DNA from: Cercozoa sp. M6MM
Lineage: Eukaryota > Protista > Endomyxa: Ascetosporea
Reading direction: 5' to 3' (one strand)
Assembly: GCA_040357565.1 (NCBI GenBank)
Contig: JBDODJ010000031.1
Length of the DNA stretch: 64,000 nt
This document shows positions 5,185-44,169 of this stretch, piece after piece (the first letter of the stretch is position 1; each line of letters begins with the position of its first letter). The position numbers and the translations under genes are program-made. A model generated the notes under the pieces. The model saw nothing but the letters and a program-made list of their open reading frames with translations, was not told where the DNA came from and did no database searches.

Positions 5185-6631
5185 ATGATGCAGCAGATGC
5201 AAGAAGACGAGGACGAAGAAGCACCACCGCCGACAGTGTTGGACCTACTGCAGCGAAGTCGACAGCAGCGCCTCGAACGCGCTCATTCAAGTCAGTCTGG
5301 CAACGTACTGTGCCCTCCCTCTCCTCAACAGATCCTTCTGGATCGTCCGTGCGTGTGTAGGTGCATTCGAGTCGAACACGGACAAGAGCACAGGTACGAG
5401 TGCAACGTGACTTGCAAGAACTCACGTCGATGCGCACGGCTGTGGAAGGGACGTCAACACTCGTCACTCTACCTGACTCGGATGTAGCTGATCACTACCT
5501 GGTTCTTCCGTGTCTCTCTTGTATGTTGACGTCTTGCAGAATAACCTGCGCATCCACCTCGAAGTACGGCCGTCGCGCGGATTTTTTGCCGGATTCGGTC
5601 TACACTTTGAGGTATCCGACTGTGTACGACACAGCTGCCTCCCTTTGTGGTGTACTGCGTGTCATTTGGGGCAGATCGAGTGCTCGGAAAGGTACCCGTT
5701 CACTGCGCCGCAAGTGCGCTCACTCGCGAAAGTGTTCCACCCAAACATTCGCCTGCAGGACGGCGTCGTTCTTTTGCCGCTTCTCAACGAATGGGCCCCA
5801 ACACTTGTACGGTGAACATACCGAGTGCACACCTGTGTGTGTGCAAATGCAGATACATGTGGACATGTGCAGTCGTTGAATTTCGTCGTTTACTCGCTTC
5901 AGTTGATGCTGTGTGATCCTGCACGCGATGAGCACTGCGGTACATTCGCATACTCTGAATATTCTGCATGGATGTATGGTATTTAGTCGGAAACGAAACA
6001 GCAGCGTACCTGTACCAAAGCGACCGCGAGCAGTATGCACGAGCGGTGCTTCAGTTCTTTTTTGCCTTCTCCTTACATATTCATTAGCATACAGGTGGAA
6101 CATGCCTCACGAGGAGGCGAATTCAATGGAGTGGTTTACTCTGATCTGTAACTCAACTGCAATACTCTTTGCTACTGTCATCAAAAATGCCCTTGCCATC
6201 GCAGGAGACGACAGACACCGACAAGGAGGAAACGGAGAATTAATGTGTGTTTGTACCGACTTTTTAGTGTGCGTGATTTGTCTATGTGTATTCTTGTGCA
6301 TGCAGGAGGAAGAAGCGATAGCTATGGACTTTTCGAATCTGCGCATAGACACGCCACGCGCCAAGAGACGGCGCAAAGGTACCCCGATTCCGAAGTCCAG
6401 ACATAGCAGTGTCGATACCGAAGTGTGTATGTGTGCACAGCAGTAACAAGAGACGCGTTGGCACTCGAAAATCAACTGGTCACGTGGAGTCTTCCTGTAC
6501 ATCACAGCCTGTCATGATATATACACTCTGCAATACGTGCAACTGTCTCAGGAGGGAGCATTTCAGACACCTAGCTTGCAAGCACAAGTACCAGAGCCAA
6601 TTGCGAGTTTTGTGTTTTTCGCGCAACCATG
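5185..6631 (+). CDS. Ubiquitin-conjugating (E2) fold protein, Ubc12/UBE2M-like, catalytic Cys absent; 3' end uncertain
   Basis: Motifs AQVRVQRDLQEL, EVRPSRGFFAG and RYPFTAPQVRSLAKVFHPNIRLQDGVVLLPLLNEW across GT-AG introns. Confidence 0.75.
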
Positions 6632-6820
6632 AGCACGAGCAGGTGTCGGCACCGACTTCACGTGGCAATACCTCTCCGAGCCATAGTGCACGGACCAACG
6701 AGTCAGCAGCCGTGTCTCTTTCAATGCCTGCGCATCAACGCAGGCGAAGTGAGGGAGCCTGGCCACAGAGACACCGCAACGCCTTCAGTTCAACCTACAG
6801 TTAACAGTCCGATTTTGTAC

Positions 6821-6895
6821 CAACTCTGTAGTTTCCCTGTCTCGGTCCTGGGGTGGGCCACAAGCGCATGGCCATAGCCCAGCGCCCACTTAGGG
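6821..6895. repeat. Small dispersed repeat, copy A (related copies at 35189-35258, 35279-35352, diverged at 11778-11822)
   Basis: caact.tgtagtt.ccctgt...ggtcctggggtggg.cacaagcg...tag.cca...cttagg is shared with the copy starting at 35279. Confidence 0.75.
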
Positions 6896-7125
6896 TAGGT
6901 TGAACTATCGTTTTAGAGCCCGAGAGGTCTTGACCAGCGGCTTTAAATTCTGCGACTCGGGAGAACTGAGCTCACGGTCAGTGACATAAGACAAGACATG
7001 ATAGTCACTTATTTGGTACAAAAGTGAACAAATTTGACGTGTTCGCTAGCATCTGACAGCCCTTAATTTTATATGTGATTGGAATAACCAAACATACAAC
7101 TCGAGTGATGGCGTGCGGGAACGAC

Positions 7126-7974
7126 TTAGAACTTGAGCTTCGAGAAGAGGAAGGCAGTCGGGGCCGTCTGCTCCTTCTCGAGGTAACTGCGCACGCAACA
7201 GACACGTTAGTCGACTTGCTTGCCGCACTGAATGGATCTCGCTTCCAGTCGAGACATTCGCGAGCTGAAGAACAGCTCGCCGATGTCTTGCGGACGAGCC
7301 CACCAACCACCGAAATGGAAGGCAGGACACGACCGCAGCTCAGCGCGGTGCCGCTCCAAAACGGAGCCGACACAACCAAACGCCTCTGCCGGTTTGTGCT
7401 GGACGGGTCGCCCCTTACGATGGAGATCGTGCAAGCCACAAGCAATCACAAGGCAAAAGCGAAAAAAACGCGCCAAGTGAGCAGACACAAGAGCAAAATA
7501 AATCCGCTGTACCGCGTCTTCATCGTCTTGCGCAGCGTCTTCTTGACCTCGGCCTTCTTGTCAGCATCCTTGATGGCGGCGGCCGTCACCAGGTCCTTAA
7601 GCTGGAGGTCAGCGTTCGGGATCGTGAAGCGCGTCGGCATGACGTGCTGCAGGTTCACGAACTTGACGAACGACTTGATCTGCGACTTGCGCAGGATCTG
7701 CTTTTTCGACATCGACTTGGTGACCTTCAGCGGGGCGCGCTCAACACCGGCCACGATGACGTGCGGGAACGGGCGGGCCTTGCTGCCGTTGTTGACCTTG
7801 ACGATCACGGCCTTCTTACCGGCGAAACGGCCAGCAAGCAGCACAACCACACGGCCGGGCTTGATGCTGCGCGCAAAGACAATATATCATCAAGCGAAAA
7901 ATACGAACAGCGCCCCAAAAAAGCACTTATAAGTGCGCAACAACTTACAACTTCTTGCTCTCGTTCTTGGACAT
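7126..7974 (-). CDS. RPL27: 60S ribosomal protein L27 (eL27); exons 7974-7949, 7866-7513, 7186-7126
   Basis: MSKNESKKFIKPGRVVVLLAGRFAGKKAVIVK...IKSFVKFVNLQHVMPTRF...FLFSKLKF*. Canonical splice sites and biased codon usage. Confidence 0.97.
7218..7436 (-). ncRNA. Unidentified structured RNA element in RPL27 intron 2
   Basis: Closing helices gcttg/caagc, gcac/gtgc, gatctc/gagatc and tccag/ctgga enclose about five hairpins, including ccaU(UUCG)gtgg and agacat..cgagctg/cagctcg..atgtct. G-U wobbles favour the minus (sense) strand. Confidence 0.5.
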
Positions 7975-8161
7975 CTCGAGTGTGTTGTAGGGTTCCCAAA
8001 AAAAAACAGGATTCGCTGCTTAGTATTTTTGGCACAGGCGCTCCGGTCTGTTTCTCCCTGGGCTCAATTATTTTTGCCCGGGCAGAGCCCGAAGTGCGAG
8101 CAGTCCAGAGTCCTGTCCAGTGGTGTCTAGTGTTTCTTTGGCACTCTAATTGGCGCGATCG

Positions 8162-10781
8162 ATGGAGGAAAGCTATCAGGGTGACCCACAGCAGCCGTAT
8201 AATGTCAGTAGGTATGTTGTGGCATTTCGGAATGCATCGAGTTTTAATTTTAAGTGGTCATCGTTTTTTTTTTTTTTTTGCACAAAGCGATGAGGGTGAC
8301 GACATCGCTTTCGATGATGTGGGTGTAGCCTCGCTCCCCGGAAGTGTCGCCAATGTTGTTAAGGTATTGGCCCTCCCTTTCTTTACTTTTACCCGCTTGA
8401 CCCCCTTATCCCCACCCCCACCCCCACCCCCTTCTAACCCCCCCCCCTACCCCCTAGAACGTCATAGGCAGCGGAATCCTGTCGCTTCCGTTCGCTTTTA
8501 GACTGGCCGGTGCCCTCTTTCTGAGTTTGGTATGATGCATATGCCTGGTGCGTCACGTGCAATCTCGAGTTTAGGTTTGTGGCCGGGTTTGCTGCTGTTC
8601 CTTCTGTGCTGGGTGCTCTCGATCGCGACCTACCTAATACTCGCCAAGTGTGCACAGGAGGCTGCTGTATTGTTTTCTGTCCTGTCCTGGCTATGTAAGG
8701 TGTGTGGCAGGTGCGCGGAAAATCTGTGCATATGCGTTTAATACGCAGGAAAGGAGCGCCGCCAAGGGCGTTGCCTTTAGCTACAGCTACAAGGACGTGA
8801 TGGCAGCAGCAAAAGGTCCGCGCTGGGCAATTGCTGTCGATTACACAATTTCTATCCTCAGCATCATTTCATGCACGAGCTATATCGTGCTAATTGGCGA
8901 CTACGGTGCCGCCATGAACCTCGTATTTTCTGGCATTCACTCACGTCCTGGCAAGTGTAGTACCATGAATAGGTGTGTTCGCCGGACACACTGTGTACCA
9001 ACCGTGCCGTACAGCAACTGGTGGTGGCCGTTGGCATCCTGCTGCCACTGTGTTTGCTGCGTGACCTGTCACCTCTGTACCACCCTTCTTGATGCTGGCA
9101 CACATTGTGGTATTTCAGAATGAACACTTTAGGAAGTACATGAGTGTCGTTGGACTGCTTGCTGTTGTGTAACGTGCTGCTTTGCGATGTAACTACTCGC
9201 GATGTTGCTCTTGCATGTGTTGGCAGGTACACGGCCGTCTTTGTTGTTGTCACCGACGACACCGGTGATTCGGTTCCTGGTATGCGTGCTCGTTTTGGTT
9301 TCAATGAGGCATCCAAGCAGCAAAGCATGGGTACGTAGAGGATAGGAAGCTAGACTGGTGGAATTTTGACGTGCAACTGTTCGAAAGTGTCTCTCTCCTG
9401 AACGGTATACATCTCGCATCTTACCTTAGCCGTACCCCTCGCCTTCTCCCACTGTTTTAACCTCGCAGCCACATTTTCGAGTCACTACAATGCACCGCGC
9501 TTCTACGCCGAACTCAAGAATCGATCGGTATGTTGCTAGTTGAATGTGCGTCTGTCTGTAGCTATTGGTTGGTGTGCCTGTGTAGATTAAGAGGTTTCGC
9601 GCACTGACAGTGTCGGCGTATGGACTTGTCGCTGTCCTCTCTGGCGTCGGTACGTTGTTAGGCTTTCTGCTTTTGTGCGGTTCATTTTTATGGGATCGTA
9701 GTGGGCGTTGGTGCTTATGCAACGTTCGGTCGGGCCACGAAAGGCAATATCTTGGTACCTTTCTTTTTGTTGTTGTGTATGAGCCTGTGATTAAGTACGA
9801 ATGTGGTGGCTGTAGCTGAGCTACTCGGAGGACAATGTCGGCGCCGTTGTTGCGCGACTTGCCACTCTAGTTGTATGCTCATCTTCTTTTCAGTTTCCGC
9901 ACTACCTTCCTTCCTTCCTTCCTTCCTTCCTTCCTTCCTTCGTTCCTTTATTTCTTCCTTCTTTTTTCCCTACCTTCTTTCCTCCTTTCCTCCTTTTCTT
10001 CATTCCGTCCTTTCTTCCTATCTACACCTATTTATCTCCCTCCCTCTACGCGGGTTCGTCTACAATCACGCTGTCGTTTAGTAGTCAATCATGGGTACGT
10101 TCGCACTCGTGTTCAATGCGGGCCGAGTCGCCACCAGCAACCTTCTCGTGCGACTGCTCAATCGCATCGACAGAAGAGACGATAGCGCTATCAACAGCAG
10201 TGTCAGCAGTGATGACACCAGACTCCTGGTGGAGGATGGCAACTCTGTCGGTAGGATTGCTTTGTGCATGTCTCAGTCTGTGCAGTAATTGGTGTTTTGC
10301 AGGTGCCCCTCCCAGAGACGATTTGACGAAGTCGCAGCGCTACGCTCTCACTATGTTTATGTTGATCTGCGTCACGACTGCAGGTACTAGAGGATCCAGT
10401 TGGCATGTGCGTCTCTATTTGATTGTTGTGGAAACAGGAGTACTGGCTGATGACGTGTCCACAGTGAATGCCATCAAGGGCGCTCTCACCAACTCCCCTG
10501 GTACCGTCGTTCCCTTGATTTTTCTATCGGTTGTGCTACGCATGCGACGTTTTGTTTGTGCAGTTACATACATCTTTCCGGGCATGATCTGGCTGTCACT
10601 CGGCGACTCGCAACATCGGTGGATGCATCGCTTCGCCTACTTTCTCATCGTTTTCGGAGTGGTTTGTTTGTGATTTTGATATGGATGCATGCTCGTGGTT
10701 GTTTTATGCTTTGCTTTCTTATAGTTCACATCAATTGTCAGTCTGTCGGTCACATTGGTCAAACTGGGCAAGACGAACTGA
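8162..10781 (+). CDS. Amino acid transporter, SLC38/AVT (Aa_trans) family, multi-exon
   Basis: SVANVVKNVIGSGILSLPFAFRLAG, SYIVLIGD and AVTYIFPG motifs, with many hydrophobic exons. Confidence 0.9.
9906..9945 (+). repeat. (TTCC)n microsatellite in an intron
   Basis: Directly visible. Confidence 0.9.
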
Positions 10782-35940: not shown

Positions 35941-38900
35941 TTAGCGACGACCCTTCTTCCGAGAAATGCGTTCTTGCTTTGCACGCTGTTGCAGTTGAAC
36001 CTTGCGCTGCACGCGCTTCTGCAAGAATTCGGCACGTGGCAACTCCTTGCCCTTCTTTCTCTGCACAAACAAACACAATTTGGGTTGTTTAAGCGAACAG
36101 TAGGGCGCAAAACCTATAGAATTGCCGTACCTGCACCTTGCGTCGCTGGTCTTTGTCCATGTTGCGGAGCTGGCGACGCTCCTTTCTCTCACGCATCTAC
36201 CAAATGTATGCACTGCACACAGCTACGGGGCAAAGGTAAAACAGGTACCTGCTTAATGGCAGAGGCATCACGCAATTCGCGTGAACCCTCAGCACGACGT
36301 TTCTGCTGCTTCTGCTCTGTGCTACCAGCAGTGTGCCACACCCGTTTGGAGTGATCTATCACAACCAGGGAGAAACAGAGTTGACGTAAATGCAAGACAA
36401 AGAGCGCAGACAAACGAGCGTCAACCCACCCATGTGCTTGAAGTCGCTGTCACTGACAACATCGGTCAGCGAGCGAGCAGTGCGCTGCTTCCAGCGACGG
36501 AAAGCGGTCTGTGCGGCACCACCGCTCTTGCTACGAAACATCAAAGGTCAGTAATATCTCGATACCCACCCATGAGGTCAACTTTACATGGCAGTAGCGT
36601 CCTTCGAAAGAGAGGCAGTGGCAACGTCACCGCCATCAGTCGGAAGTGCCATCACGAACTGCTTGACGTAGCGACGCTTGCGCGTGTCCCACTTTTGAAC
36701 CATTCTAGGCACATAAACTCGTGTGTAGATAGACGCGAAGCAACGCAAAACATAGCAGCGCACGCACCTCTTCTGACCGAGTGCCTGGGCCTCCTTGCCG
36801 CGCAGATCCACGTCAAGCAATGCCACGTTGCTCATGTTCTCCTCGTCCTGCCCGGAGTGGTGTCAGAGTGCATACGTACATTCAACAAACAAGAGGTACC
36901 ACGGCATTGCCATTGACGCGCATGTGCCGCTCTGCCAACTCCTCGCTCTGAACCATCAGCGCATACAGAACCAAGAAAGAAACATACAAATCGCAGCGAG
37001 CGGTACCGTGGGCGCAGCAGCGTGCGAAACAAAAAAGCGCGAATCGCGAAAGTCGTCAGTGCGCTTCTTACGCTTCTTGAGAGTCGGCTCGTCATCCTCG
37101 ACCTGCTGCTGCTCCGGCTCTTGTTGTTTTTTCTGTTGTTTTTGGTGTTGCTGCTGCTGCTGCTGCTGCTCACGTTGACGCTTCTTACGGCGCTTCTTGT
37201 TGCTAAGACGACGAGGCTTCTTGAGCTGCTCCTCCTCCTGTAAAGCATGCGCTTTGTGGGGTCGAAGGTATAACAGCGGCATGCAGTATGTACCTCAGCA
37301 TCGTGCACGCGAGCATTATCATTTCTCACAACCTCGTCGGCTTGGGCAAGGTGAGCAACACTAGTGAGCGAGCCAGCATCATCACTGCCTCCTTGCAGAG
37401 CCAGAATCGCGTCGCGCTTCTTCAACTCTAGCTTCATGGCGTCGCTTGCCATCTACCGCAAACACAGTCAAGACAATACATGTGCACACCTAAGCATCCT
37501 GTACCTTGGCCGAAGCCTGACGCGAGTTCTGACTGGTCTTGCCTTGCCTGACAAGTCGCATGACTGTGCAAAGACCAACAGGGTCGCAAACGAAAAACAT
37601 AAGAGTACGCGATGGCCTTGCGCTGCAGAAAATCGAACACGTTGCCCTTGTTGGGACGGTACCTACAACACAGAGGTAATACGGATGGCACTGTTGGGCA
37701 GTGATACCGCTCCAGCATGGTGGCAGCGTCGAGTTGTTCCTCCGCCTCCTGGCCTGAGACGAAAAGTGTAAAAGAAGAGCTCCAATATCCGAATACAAGT
37801 GAGAAGGTACTCAGAAGATGTGCAAAGATCGGATGCGCTTTGATGCCGTCATACAACTGGTCCTCATCTAAACGCATACTTACAACGCACGTCAAGAAAC
37901 AAAACACAGAAACACAGCGGTACCATCGACAGGCTTCTCACGCATATGACCACGCCCGTCTGTGCACACACGTACACTCCCAGAAAGAGGCGAAGAAACG
38001 GCATTGAACACACCATTGTCGAGGAGCAACTTGGCGCTGCTGACCCCGCGTTTCGTTGCCTGCGGACGCGACTTTTGGTACTTCTCGTGCGCTGCATCGC
38101 ATAAAGGAGTCCACAATCCTATGTACAGAGGTGTGTACCCTTGACGCTAGCCTCGGACATGGCGCGAACCTCCTCGTTGCGTTTTTCCACACGCCGGAGC
38201 CACTCGCAGGCATCACGCAGCGGTCCCGCCGGTACCGTGCCCAGGACAAAGTACTTGGCATACTTCTCATCGTCAGTCTGCGCATGCACACATGTAACCG
38301 CCCAGACTTCTCACTCACCCCACACAGAAAAACACGCACCATGTGGGCAGCGGCCGCAGGAAGACGAGTCAGAATCGGTCGTTGCAAGAAACGGATCAAG
38401 TCGCAATAGTACGGTAGCTAGGGACATGTCACAAGAGCAAGTCCAGAGACACGCAAGGCATAAGACACAGACACGAGGCGACAGGAGACTACCTCTTCTG
38501 GTGTCACAAGCGTGAGCACACGACCCTTGCGACCGGCACGTGCCACACGGCCTGCAGAAAAAACATGAACAACGTCGCTTTGCAACTTTTCCTGCAGCAA
38601 GCGTACCGGCGCGATGCACAAACGTTTTGGGAGCAGCACACAGGTCAACATTGATGACGTTGTCCAGTAGCGGCAAGTCGAGGCCACGAGCCGCCACATC
38701 CGTCACCACCTACCCTCACATGCACAACAATCAAAGTGCAACGTCTGTCAAAGCATACTGCAGTGACAGTGGATGTGTTTGTGTGTGCTAAACCATGCAC
38801 TGACGACGACGCGAACGGAAGAGTGCGAGTGCACGTCGACGCGCAGCTTGATCCATCTGACCGTAAGCCACGACCCTGCACAAAAAGTATCCACTACAGG

Positions 38901-40766
38901 CACAAACATACAAGTGTTTTGTACGAGGAAATGTCGGCAGCACGCAGCAGGTTATGCACGAGTTGCGCCCGCCACCGCGTTGCACAGAACAGCAAGCACC
39001 TACGATACACACACACACTGCACACTCGATACAGTCGCAGGTACAAGATGCACGCGGTACTGTTCGTAGCCATCGCGCAACACTGCGGTTTGAGTTTCCT
39101 CCCCTTCTTCCTTCTCCTCCTCCTGTTGCTGCTGCGCCATGAGCAGCTCGTCCTCTTCTTGTTCGGCATCGGCTGACTCTTGCTGTTGCTGCTGCAACAG
39201 GAGCTGGTTCTTCTTGTTTTTGCGACGCTCCTTACGTTTCTTCTTCTGAGTTTCACCAACATTGAACAGCCAACAAAACAAAATAACGGCAGCGCACAAG
39301 GCGATACCGGAACGTGCAGCACGGAGGGAATCGTCGGCGCCACGTTGGCAGGCTTCAAACGAGAGGCCTGCGTCTGTGCTTGCGAGAGTTCCTATCTCAC
39401 AGACACGCATGCGGATGCCATAATAAACACACACACGAAATGAGCGCCAAGATACCAGGTCGACACGAATGACGTGCTGGAGCATCACGAGCAGTGCACC
39501 CAGCGTCTCGTCGCTGCGGCAGTGCAGAAAGGCGGCACTCAGCTTGTCACTACACTAACTCGTTGTTGCACCCGCATAGCTTCAGATTATAGTAAGACAA
39601 TGCGTACCTCAACTTAGTGTCAGTGTCCAGTCGAATAACGGCTGCATCCTGCAGCGCATACGCAAATCAACCAAAACCGAGAAGCAAGCACTTCACATCG
39701 ACCAACGCACCTGTGCCAGACCGGCGCGAGCAAAGGCAGCAAGTGCTTCGGGCATCGTTGCCGAAAACAACGAAGTTTGTCTGCTCGTGCGAGCCTATAC
39801 AAGCGCAAACATGCGGCGATGCAAACCACAACAGATAGCGCGGGTTGAGGAAATACCTCAGGAAGTGCCTGTAGGATAGCACGCAGCTGTGGAGCAAAAC
39901 CAAGTTCGAAAAGCTGATCGGCCTCGTCGAACACAACGTGTTTCACCTACAGATAGTTGAGTACATGTGTGCTAATGAGATGGCGGGAACAAAGATCTTA
40001 CGTTAGAAAGGGACAGTTCGCCCTTGGTGGCATGCAGCAGATGCACCAGACGACCCGGGGTGGCAACCAAAATGTCCGGGTTGCCACTCAGTGCTGCGCA
40101 AACATAAGACGCGTTTGCACAGTAAAATAAAGAGAAAAGGAGTAGGCAACTACCCTCAAACTGCGTCTCCAGTGCTTCGCCGCCAACGACACATTCCACA
40201 CGCAAACGCGGCTTCGTGTGCTTACTCAGCTGTGTGCGGGTGGAGTAACAAACACACCAAGCACGCACGCACACGCATTTATACGCACCTTTCTGGCAAA
40301 CTTTAGAGTCTGAAGCGCGAGCTCTCTCGTCGGTGACAGAATTAGCGCCCGAACACTACGAATTCAATCACATACACAGCAAGTACAAAGCACAAACGGA
40401 TAGGTGGGTATGGGCGCGTGGATACCCAACAGGACGGTGTGATTCCAATGTGTTCAACACCGGAATGAGAAAAGCAGCCGACTTGCCACTACCAGTACGT
40501 GCCATGGCGACAATGTCGCGACCGGCCAGTGCCACTGGAATCGACTTACGCTGGATCGGTGTTGGCAGACGGTAACCCATATGCGCGATGCCTGTGAATG
40601 CATGGATATCCTGCAAAAAAAGAAGAAAATCAGTTCGCAAGGTACCCTTCAGCAGAGCGGTATGAAGTCCCATGCTCTGGAAGGATCCACCCGACACCTT
40701 CTTCTTGCCAGCGCCTGCGCTGACTTCGGCGGCCAAAGCCGCCAACAGGCCGTTCTCGCCCGACAT
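35941..40766 (-). CDS. DDX54: DEAD-box RNA helicase DDX54/Dbp10, multi-exon
   Basis: [91 protein letters not shown]. Confidence 0.93.
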
Positions 40767-41064: not shown

Positions 41065-42835
41065 ATGGATCCTAACGCTGCATCCTTTCAGTTCGACCCG
41101 AACGCGGTGTCGTTCGAGTTCAGCCCGACCCCAGCGCCGCAACCTGCTCAACCGGAGCCTACACCGGAGCCTACGCCGGAGCCTGCTCAGTTGGAGCCTA
41201 CACCCGAGCCTACGCCAGAGCCAGAATCCGAGCAGCCGAAGGAGGAGGAGAAGCAGCCCGAAGCCGAAGCTGAGCCTGAGAAGACCGTTGCAGTGAGCAA
41301 TGCTTTGCCTGCCAACGAACTGCGCGAGTTCGAGGTCAGTCTTTGCCTTCTTCCATTTTTTGTATTGTTCTGCAAAATTTTTTGGCCCATGACGTGACTT
41401 GACTTGCTCGCTCGATGCTGACAAAAATAACGATTGCTGTTCGCTCCATTTAATCCAATGGGAGTACCGAAGACTCGCTTCCGTCGAGAAGGCGCGCATC
41501 CCTCGCCGGGTGTGTCGTCGTCACGCGACGGGGGAAAGTCCTCGGACACTGTCGTAGAGAGTGCGGCCGCTGCGAGGTGCGTCTCCTTGTGAGTCGCGCC
41601 CGGCGGTAACCGCTGTCTAGCCGCTGCACGCTATTCGCTGAAGAGAGCCAACGCGGTACCTCTCTCGGGAGGGCCTGCGTCGGCAGGAGGTGTCGGTGCA
41701 CGCGGCGCAGCGGACATGGTCATATCACAGTCATGCGAGTGGCGCCACGCTTGCGCTAACACAACGAGGATTACTCTCGGTGCTCCCGGACCCTTTCGTT
41801 TTGTTGATTGCAGGCACACGACGAGCGCGAGCACCTCAACCTCGTCTTCATCGGCCACGTCGATCACGGCAAGTCCACGATGAGTGGACGTATCATGGTA
41901 GACTGGCTCACTTCCCATTACCCCCCCCCCCCCCCGCAGCTAATAATAGCATCCGATCTGGACAGGTGTCGAGCGGTCAGATCGACCGTCGCGTCATCGA
42001 GAAGTTCGAGCGCGATGCCAAGGTAGCTTGACTATCCACTTGGTTCTTCCTCTGATCACCGACCGATTCGACACCTATTTTTGTGAAGGCCAACAACCGC
42101 GAGTCCTGGTGGATTGCCTACATTCTCGACACCAGCGACGAGGAGCGCGCCAAGGGCAAGACTGTCGAGGTCGGCCGTGCCATGTTCGACACCCCCAACA
42201 AAGTACCTTGCCCCCTATCTTCATTACCCCCACCGACCTCCGTTCTTGTAGCGCTACACGATCTTTGATGCCCCGGGTCACAAGGACTACGTGCCCAACA
42301 TGATTCGCGGTGCCTCGCAGGCCGATGTCGGCGTGCTTGTGGTATCTCTTCTTCTTCCCATTACCCCTTTACTCAGTCCCCCATTCTTTACTCCATTTAC
42401 CCCCCCCCCCCCTCTTTACTTAGGTGTCGGCGCGCAACAAGGAGTTCGAGGCCGGTTTCGACCGTGGTGGCCAGACGCGCGAGCATACGCTGCTTGCTCG
42501 GTAGGCTAACTTAGCCTGCCCCTCCCCTAACCCGACCCTACCCCCTAACCACCCCCCCCCCCCCGTACCCAACCAACGCGTACAGTACGATCGGTATCAC
42601 GCGTCTCGTGGTGGCCGTCAACAAGATGGACGTGGTGGACTGGAGCAAGGAGCGCTACGAGCACATCGTCAAGAAGATGAGCACCTTCCTCAAGGCATGC
42701 GGCTACGGCAAGAGCGACATCTGGTTCGTCCCGGTGGCTGCCCTCAAGAACGACGGCGAGAACAACATTCGCGACTCTGTCGACCCTGCCGTGTGCGACT
42801 GGTGGCAGTCCTACAGTACGCTGCCTCGCCCCCAT

Positions 42836-42896
<61 letters not shown>

Positions 42897-44169
42897 GTGC
42901 CTCAGTGCAGGTTCGGCGTTCGTGCGTCGGACTACCTGACCANNNNNNNNNNNNNNNNNNNNNNNNNNNNNNNNNNNNNNNNNNNNNNNNNNNNNNNNNN
43001 NNNNNNNNNNNNNNNNNNNNNNNNNNNNNNNNNNNNNNNNNNGTGTGTGTGTGTGTGTGTGTGTGTGGGTGTGTGGGTGTGTGGGTGTGTGGGTGTGTGG
43101 GTGTGGGATTGCACGTGCATTAATTGCCCGTAGACAAGAAGAAGGCTGGCCTGTCGCTGATGCAGACTCTCGACTCGCTGCCACTGCTGGTACAGAACAT
43201 GTGCCCTCGAGACAGGCATGTATGTTTGTACTGTGTATGTTTCCACAGGAGCGACAGCATGACGCACCGCTGCGTGTGCCGATCATGTCGTCGTACCCGG
43301 ATCAGGGCAAGGTGTTTGCCCTCGGCAAGGTCGAGGCCGGTCGCATCGCTGTCGGCGATCGTGTCGTTGTTTCGCCCAACCCGAGGTAGTCTTGTCGTAG
43401 ACCACCAGTTTGCTTGTCATTGTTGTCATTGTTGCTGTTGCTTCCAACAGTGCCCTGGCGGAAACCAAGGTTGCCACCGTCGTTGGAATCTCTGTCGACG
43501 AGCAGGAGGTCGAGGGTGCTCGCTGCGGTGAGAACGTCGACCTGGCGCTCGTTGGCGTCGACTCCAGCGACGTCGATCAAGGCTGTGTGCTGTGCGCTCC
43601 GGTAGACTTGTTGCCTCCCTTCCTGTCTTCCGTGGCTATCCTTCAACTCACTTATCCTTCATCCCCGAGTAGGACAAGCCATCGCCGTCGGTGATGAAAC
43701 TCAAAGCACAGATCAACGTTCTCGGTATATTTTTGTTACAGCCTCCCTAAACAACCAGTCTTTGTAACTCCCTCTATGTCTACCTAACACAGAGCTGCCA
43801 GAGCACAAGCCGGTGATTGCCGAGGGCTACACGGCTGTGCTGCACTGCCACACCGCCGCTGTAGAGTGTGAACTCGTGCGAGTGTGCTACATGGTCGATC
43901 GCAAGACTGGCAAGAAGAAGCGACCGAGTGCTGTATGTCCTCTCGCCCTCCTCCGATTCTCTCTGTTCATGCCTATGTGTGTTGTTGTGCGCAAGCAGGC
44001 GCTGATGCGCGGAAATATGGCCGTCGTGCAGATCAACGTGTCGCAACCCATCGCCGTGGAGACTTTTGAGGCCTTCCCGCAGCTCGGCCGTTTCACGCTG
44101 CGTGACGAGTCGCTCACCACTGTGATCGGCCGTATCCTCGCCGTGCAGGAGGCCGCGCCTTCGAGCTAA
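41065..44169 (+). CDS. GSPT1: Eukaryotic peptide chain release factor 3 (eRF3/Sup35), multi-exon
   Basis: PAM2-like [16 protein letters not shown]; [74 protein letters not shown]. Confidence 0.95.
41460..41787 (+). ncRNA. RMRP: RNase MRP RNA, inside eRF3 intron 1 (41334-41813)
   Basis: P1 gggagtaccga/tcggtgctccc; P2 actcgc/gcgagt; CR-I GAAAGTCCTCG (41534-41544) pairs with CR-V ACAACGAGGATTACT (41761-41775); P8 gta-GAGAG-tgc (GARAR loop); CR-IV cagtca. Confidence 0.9.

Follow-up and report, generated by a model that had tools for sequence, protein, structure and literature searches.

The window analysed here, a 64-kb stretch of DNA from the rhizarian Cercozoa sp. M6MM, carries an RNase MRP RNA in sense orientation within the first intron of a gene for eRF3, together with a promoter-type element upstream of the RNA and a T-run downstream of it (Table 1). 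The host gene is modelled with GT-AG splice sites in 13 exons that comprise 542 codons with no internal stop. Its start codon lies about 300 nt from that of a divergently transcribed DEAD-box helicase gene, whose exon at 40428-40589 (minus strand) finds its top PDB matches in DDX54 (61.4 bits) and DBP10 (58.6 bits); this bears out, as a DDX54/Dbp10-like gene, the DDX54 neighbour named in the original prediction.

Table 1. Features of the eRF3 locus and of the RNase MRP RNA unit in its first intron (positions in the window).
Feature	Position	Strand	Basis or remark
First exons of divergent DDX54/Dbp10-like DEAD-box helicase gene	40428..40766	-	start codon at about 40766
eRF3 exon 1, 90 codons	41065..41334	+	stop-free frame from ATG; donor GTCAGT follows
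eRF3 intron 1, 479 nt, GT..AG, phase 0	41335..41813	+	hosts the whole predicted MRP transcription unit
USE/PSE-like element: T6, GGCCCATGA (core 41384-41392), CGTGAC	41378..41398	+	shared RCCCATGA
A-rich stretch AAAAATAA, possible TATA-like element of uncertain role	41423..41430	+	-37 to -30
RNase MRP RNA, P1 5' strand to P1 3' strand	41460..41787	+	328 nt; RF00030 match
CR-I, GAAAGUCCUCGGAC	41534-41547	+	read from sequence and Rfam alignment
P4 pseudoknot 5' strand, within CR-I	41537..41544	+	8 bp complementarity with 41765-41772
P8 terminal loop GAGAG (MRP-specific GARAR motif)	41557..41561	+	Rfam covariance-model alignment
CTAAC, proposed branch point; conserved MRP sequence just before CR-V	41756..41760	+	Rfam alignment
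P4 pseudoknot 3' strand, within CR-V	41765..41772	+	read from sequence and Rfam alignment
T4 run, likely terminator/3'-end signal	41799..41802	+	12 nt after MRP RNA
eRF3 exon 2, GTPase G1 motif	41814-41897	+	begins directly after AG
eRF3 exons 2-13: GTPase domain, domains 2 and 3, stop codon 44167-44169	41814..44169	+	GT-AG model

The Pfam domains GTP_EFTU and GTP_EFTU_D2 match the host gene, and comparison with solved structures, run exon by exon, separates eRF3 from its relative HBS1: exon 4 scores 42.9 bits against eRF3a and 21.2 bits against HBS1, exon 13 scores 37.1 bits against eRF3 and 25.2 bits against HBS1, and exon 7 by itself is ambiguous. Beyond this gene, the genome searches recovered only two further family members, both of them copies of eEF1A. 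Judged by these sequence comparisons the host gene is eRF3 and not HBS1, and the claimed sense placement of the RNA within eRF3 intron 1 is supported by the exon scores as well as by the 13-exon model. The intron, of the GT-AG type, is long, as had been proposed, but its start and length needed correction, from 480 nt beginning at 41334 to 479 nt beginning at 41335; the distance of 26 nt between the end of the RNA and the 3' splice site holds. The other eRF3 introns measure 49-85 nt, apart from one of 318 nt that includes an assembly gap. Several of the short introns contain C12-C17 homopolymer tracts (41920-41936, 42405-42418, 42553-42565), and similar C tracts occur in an intron of an MFAP1-like gene elsewhere in the genome (locus L004, about 1190-1210). 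In intron 7 (42840-43100) long (GT)n tracts flank the assembly gap, an N run at 42944-43042.

The identity of the RNA is firm. The Rfam model RNase_MRP (RF00030) matches 41460-41786 on the plus strand at 86 bits (gathering score 50, E 2.1e-22), and the alignment spans the full model, positions 1-266 of 266. The match was the sole one above threshold when the whole window was scanned with Rfam, and a genome-wide search with RF00030 (23.6 Mb, 2235 contigs) returned this locus only, which makes it a single-copy gene. The original prediction had read an MRP RNA from the letters of the intron and had pointed to the Rfam model, run on the intron and on the genome, as the way to check it; the outcome is a significant full-length match and no other copy in 23.6 Mb. 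The hallmarks on which it drew, P1, P4 and a P8 with a GAGAG loop, can all be read in the sequence. P1 forms 10 bp between 41460-41469 and 41778-41787, the CR-I and CR-V blocks are aligned to the model with high posterior probability, and P4 consists of eight contiguous pairs, both strands of which depart from the Rfam consensus in ways that keep the pairing.

A GARAR loop on P8 sets MRP RNA apart from RNase P RNA. The idea that the match is a misassigned RNase P RNA was considered and rejected, because a separate gene for that RNA exists on another contig, the single one in the genome (97.6 bits; locus L010, 1501-1744, minus strand, contig C183). By sequence and structure, then, the RNA in eRF3 intron 1 is a genuine RNase MRP RNA, putatively expressed, assembled with P/MRP proteins and active in cleaving pre-rRNA.

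The arrangement was also looked for outside this genome. A protein search with exon 7 among 1.84 billion representatives gave best matches of about 55% identity, and a metagenome scan with a CR-I pattern yielded 117 loci, none of them close to the M6MM MRP RNA beyond the CR-I/P8 core and none with eRF3 exons nearby by tblastn, most of the contigs being short. The metagenome result is weak evidence that the pairing of eRF3 and MRP RNA is not widespread.

When the 150 nt preceding the MRP RNA were compared with the corresponding regions of nine U6 genes and of the RNase P RNA gene, a shared upstream element emerged. At the MRP locus it appears as a T-run followed by GGCCCATGA (41378-41392), inside intron 1 and 74 nt before the RNA, distances being counted from the first C of the motif (41386 for MRP) to the start of the Rfam model. 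The octamer RCCCATGA with a T-rich prefix stands at -67 to -69 of all nine U6 genes, and the RNase P RNA and MRP RNA genes both carry RCCCATGA at -74. In the reverse direction, a scan of the sequence that follows the motif at other sites in the genome picked up a U2 gene (-68) and a tRNA-Sec gene (-69). Direct searches placed the motif in all six U1 genes, both U4 genes and five of the six U5 genes, at -66 to -72; the remaining U5 gene has it with one mismatch. Among the other small-RNA genes checked the motif is thus present 66-74 nt upstream in 25 of 26, or, with the MRP and RNase P RNA genes counted, at -66 to -74 of 27 of 28. The promoter regions of MRP and U2 agree at 18 of 21 positions. 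U1, U2, U4, U5, U6, tRNA-Sec, RNase P and MRP together make up the classical SNAPc-dependent type 3 set, and a SNAPC3 homologue is encoded in the genome (PF12251, 55 and 33 bits). SNAPC1 (PF09808) was not found in the genome, by a search that gave no match in any control genome either.

Since the octamer occurs only three times on both strands of the 64-kb window (128 kb), which is about the chance expectation, the probability that it would fall by accident within a few nucleotides of the expected place is only about 2e-4. The two further occurrences in the window, at 10089-10096 (minus strand) and 36568-36575 (plus strand), are without the T-rich prefix and without a downstream Rfam match, and were judged to be chance. 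At 7187-7512, a candidate site of a structured RNA in a long RPL27 intron, no USE motif is close by, and Rfam gave no match at E<=1 across 6500-8500. The motif at the MRP locus is therefore unlikely to be there by chance, and its conserved sequence and spacing suggest that it is functional. If the distance from the element to the transcription start is the same as in U6 and U1, the true 5' end of the MRP RNA may lie 5-9 nt upstream of 41460. Genes of the snRNA type that share the T-rich stretch and RCCCATGA at -66 to -74 are found at loci L002-L009, L030, L046 and L164-L177. RCCCATGA is also present upstream of tRNA-Val(UAC) copies (L020, L043 and L045), at -91 in two of these loci and at -123 in the third.

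The remark in the original prediction that no obvious TATA box lies upstream of the RNA is literally true, but the absence of a promoter of its own that it implied is contradicted by the element in the intron at 41384-41392. Downstream of that element the MRP gene has the A-rich AAAAATAA, with CAAAAG at a comparable position in the RNase P RNA gene; comparison of the U6 copies and the others revealed no consensus TATA common to the type 3 genes, nor any TATA or any rule of USE-TATA spacing that would separate genes of RNA polymerase II (Pol II) from those of RNA polymerase III (Pol III).

On the 3' side, the T4 run is part of the pyrimidine tract of the intron, 11 nt before the 3' splice site, as had been pointed out; it is also a normal 3' feature of small-RNA genes in this genome, shared with U1, U2, U4, U5, U6 and RNase P RNA. 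The RNase P RNA gene has T4 at +10, U6 ends in T7-T9, and U1, U2, U4 and U5 have T4-T8 at +3 to +26. No internal run of four or more T occurs within the 328-nt MRP RNA, and the U5 genes do have an internal T4. Because T4-T8 follows every snRNA-type gene within 26 nt, it is possible that Pol III also makes the spliceosomal snRNAs, or that a T-run serves as their 3' signal. U1, U2 and U4 are free of internal T4, and their Sm sites are AAUCUCU, AUUUCUG and AAUUUCUGG, respectively.

MRP is not the only small-RNA gene of this genome found inside a host gene. The RNase P RNA, with its USE, lies in sense in the 465-nt first intron of a GH63 glucosidase-like gene (L010:1386-1896, minus strand). Exon 1 of this host is an ATG-initiated hydrophobic leader of 15 codons whose GT donor stands 27 nt before the USE, and exon 2 matches the Pfam family GH63N (PF16923, E 2e-13) from profile position 4, directly at the acceptor. 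Two U6 genes with USE and T-run likewise occupy sense introns (L004:1389-1683, minus strand, and L005:1399-1687, plus strand), so that at least two of the nine U6 genes are placed in this way; their hosts are the MFAP1-like gene, in which the 5' splice site lies 7 nt before the USE region of U6, and a DEAD-box helicase gene with a VLDEAD motif. U6 is not known to be made from introns, and for this reason the nesting of a small-RNA gene that keeps its USE is best taken to reflect where the gene is placed and not how its RNA is made.

A crude scan of codon usage gave a mixed picture for the other snRNA-type loci, with sense, antisense or no coding flanks, and is too crude for counts; it suggests that other snRNA genes are intergenic or antisense-flanked, and that nesting is frequent and not universal. 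The longest stop-free stretches proved uninformative as a test of nesting in this GC-rich DNA. The nine U6 copies are identical and occur partly in pairs that share flanks (L009/L004, L002/L007, L005/L008), and the MFAP1-like region of L004 seems to recur in degenerate form in L009, which suggests that the pairs are segmental duplicates or assembly haplotypes.

A part of the case for coupling between MRP RNA and splicing had been the position of the clearest branch-point motif. The CTAAC at 41756-41760 does lie inside the RNA beside CR-V, as described, but the argument built on it is weak: the Rfam consensus at these columns reads ..gcuAACccAAUGGGG.. (..cuAAC..), which marks the pentamer as conserved MRP sequence, and a CTRAY motif is present in only five of the 12 eRF3 introns. 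In intron 11 the A of the sole YTNAY candidate stands 5 nt short of the intron end, and since this is so, a TTGAT in intron 1, whose A lies 6 nt before the intron end and outside the MRP RNA, is a possible branch site as well. Sequence does not locate the branch point, nor does anything demand a position inside the RNA.

Taken together, the MRP gene of M6MM is likely to be an independent, USE-driven unit, probably of Pol III, nested in the eRF3 intron, as judged from its sequence and its parallels. The unit would consist of the USE/PSE-type element, a spacer of about 60 nt, the 328-nt RNA and the T4 run. Reading it as a gene with transcription of its own is favoured because the element stands at the canonical distance, because a T-run follows the RNA, and because U6 and RNase P RNA offer close parallels. 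A SNAPc-type (type 3) promoter of its own would drive transcription of the RNA, with Pol III as the probable polymerase by likeness to other eukaryotes; the transcript would terminate at the T-run and be trimmed to the P1 helix. Its production would be independent of the transcription and splicing of eRF3, and for the eRF3 pre-mRNA the unit would be mere intron content that is spliced out. Intron 1 without 41378-41802 would measure 54 nt, a normal intron size here. Some observations speak against this reading, namely that no consensus TATA is visible, that T4 is a short terminator and occurs inside the U5 genes, and that SNAPC1 was not found; the sense first-intron setting shared by MRP and RNase P RNA would also suit production that depends on the host.

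The original prediction proposed that MRP RNA may be processed from the eRF3 pre-mRNA. On this view debranching and trimming of the eRF3 intron, whether already spliced or not, would free the RNA in a Pol II-dependent manner, as with arthropod RNase P RNA or intronic snoRNAs. Its sense placement in an intron and its single copy fit such a route, and there are precedents in the intron-embedded RNase P RNA of insects (PMC4287351) and in an intronic MRP RNA annotated in Cyanidioschyzon merolae (bioRxiv 10.1101/2025.12.01.691491). However, the hallmark of the arthropod cases, the absence of Pol III signals, was looked for at this locus, and a USE and a T-run are both present, the former at -74 exactly as in the RNase P RNA gene; the U6 genes are nested in the same manner with their USE, and maturation would require the removal of about 125 nt from the 5' side and 26 nt from the 3' side, with no factor known to protect the RNA. 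Processing from the pre-mRNA is not supported by these findings and appears quite improbable.

In mammals Pol III and Pol II are known to interfere with each other where units are nested, and a coupled arrangement can be imagined in which the USE-driven unit is active while host transcription supplies a second precursor, or in which the Pol III complex acts as a roadblock that tunes the output of eRF3. Only about 310 nt separate the unit from the eRF3 start codon upstream of it, its T4 run approaches the 3' splice site closely, and RNase P RNA is likewise found in sense in a first intron. Against this, the codon-usage scan, crude as it is, points to intergenic or antisense-flanked positions for other snRNA-type genes, and nesting may simply reflect a compact genome; such coupling is quite improbable. 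Extended to both catalytic RNAs, the idea becomes that of a transitional or dual state, in which host transcription would contribute to, or gate, the production of MRP and RNase P RNA, or the Pol III unit would throttle eRF3. We regard such a state as unlikely; if it existed, it would be an independent instance, at an earlier point, of the switch completed by RNase P RNA in arthropods.

The gene model itself can also be doubted. Should the reading frame at 41065-41334 not be exon 1 of eRF3, the MRP RNA would lie in intergenic or 5'-leader DNA and not in an intron. The N-terminus encoded there contains a tandem NAxSFxF motif followed by a Pro/Glu-rich region, and its resemblance to PAM2, the motif that binds PABP, is by eye only, since neither a Pfam PAM2 match nor a PDB match was obtained for it. 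But exon 2 requires an upstream coding exon, because an in-frame TGA (41805-41807) lies 6 nt upstream of its acceptor and the G1 motif is preceded by no ATG, and the 90-codon frame opens with an ATG, ends exactly at a GT donor and joins exon 2 in phase 0. Splicing of exon 1 to exon 2 as modelled is thus the probable arrangement, and a location outside an intron is highly improbable.

The self-contained nested gene, preferred over these alternatives, has consequences for annotation. A single RNase MRP RNA gene and an RNase P RNA gene are now firmly annotated in a poorly known rhizarian, and RCCCATGA with a T-rich prefix at about -68 can be taken as the snRNA-type promoter element of the M6MM genome, usable to find further small-RNA genes such as those of telomerase RNA, U3 or SRP RNA. 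The position of an RNA in an intron is by itself no evidence for intron-derived biogenesis, and a search for promoter elements must come first. That the genes for MRP RNA, RNase P RNA and some of the U6 copies repeatedly turn up in sense introns is a modest curiosity, which could serve the study of Pol II/Pol III interplay if the organism is experimentally tractable.

Pol III genes, including those of tRNA, U6 and other small RNAs, are nested in Pol II introns in many eukaryotes, and the M6MM MRP gene does not differ from them in principle; it is a small-RNA gene of type 3 placed inside a host intron and belongs to an already known category. Type 3 genes, among which a published survey of USEs in Diaphoretickes (Fajkus et al. 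2021) lists MRP as a usual member, likewise combine an element at about -70 with a downstream T-run, whereas in M6MM the whole unit lies in the intron of a protein-coding gene and has no recognisable TATA (PMC8287931). The USE published for another rhizarian, Plasmodiophora, is GNCCCAYW, centred on CCCA as is the M6MM motif, with W at the last position where M6MM has G (PMC8287931). In insects and crustaceans RNase P RNA is intron-embedded, host-dependent and devoid of Pol III signals, and arthropod MRP RNA remains a stand-alone gene with Pol III promoters (Manivannan et al. 2015, PMC4287351). The arthropod RNase P RNA thus resembles the M6MM MRP RNA in being a catalytic RNA of the P/MRP family, placed in sense in an intron of a Pol II gene, but it has lost its signals, while the M6MM gene retains both promoter element and T-run. 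A further case of an MRP RNA in a protist spliceosomal intron comes from an unrelated lineage, the red alga C. merolae, where a 2025 preprint annotates it (bioRxiv 10.1101/2025.12.01.691491), the likeness to M6MM being drawn from this mention in the annotation.
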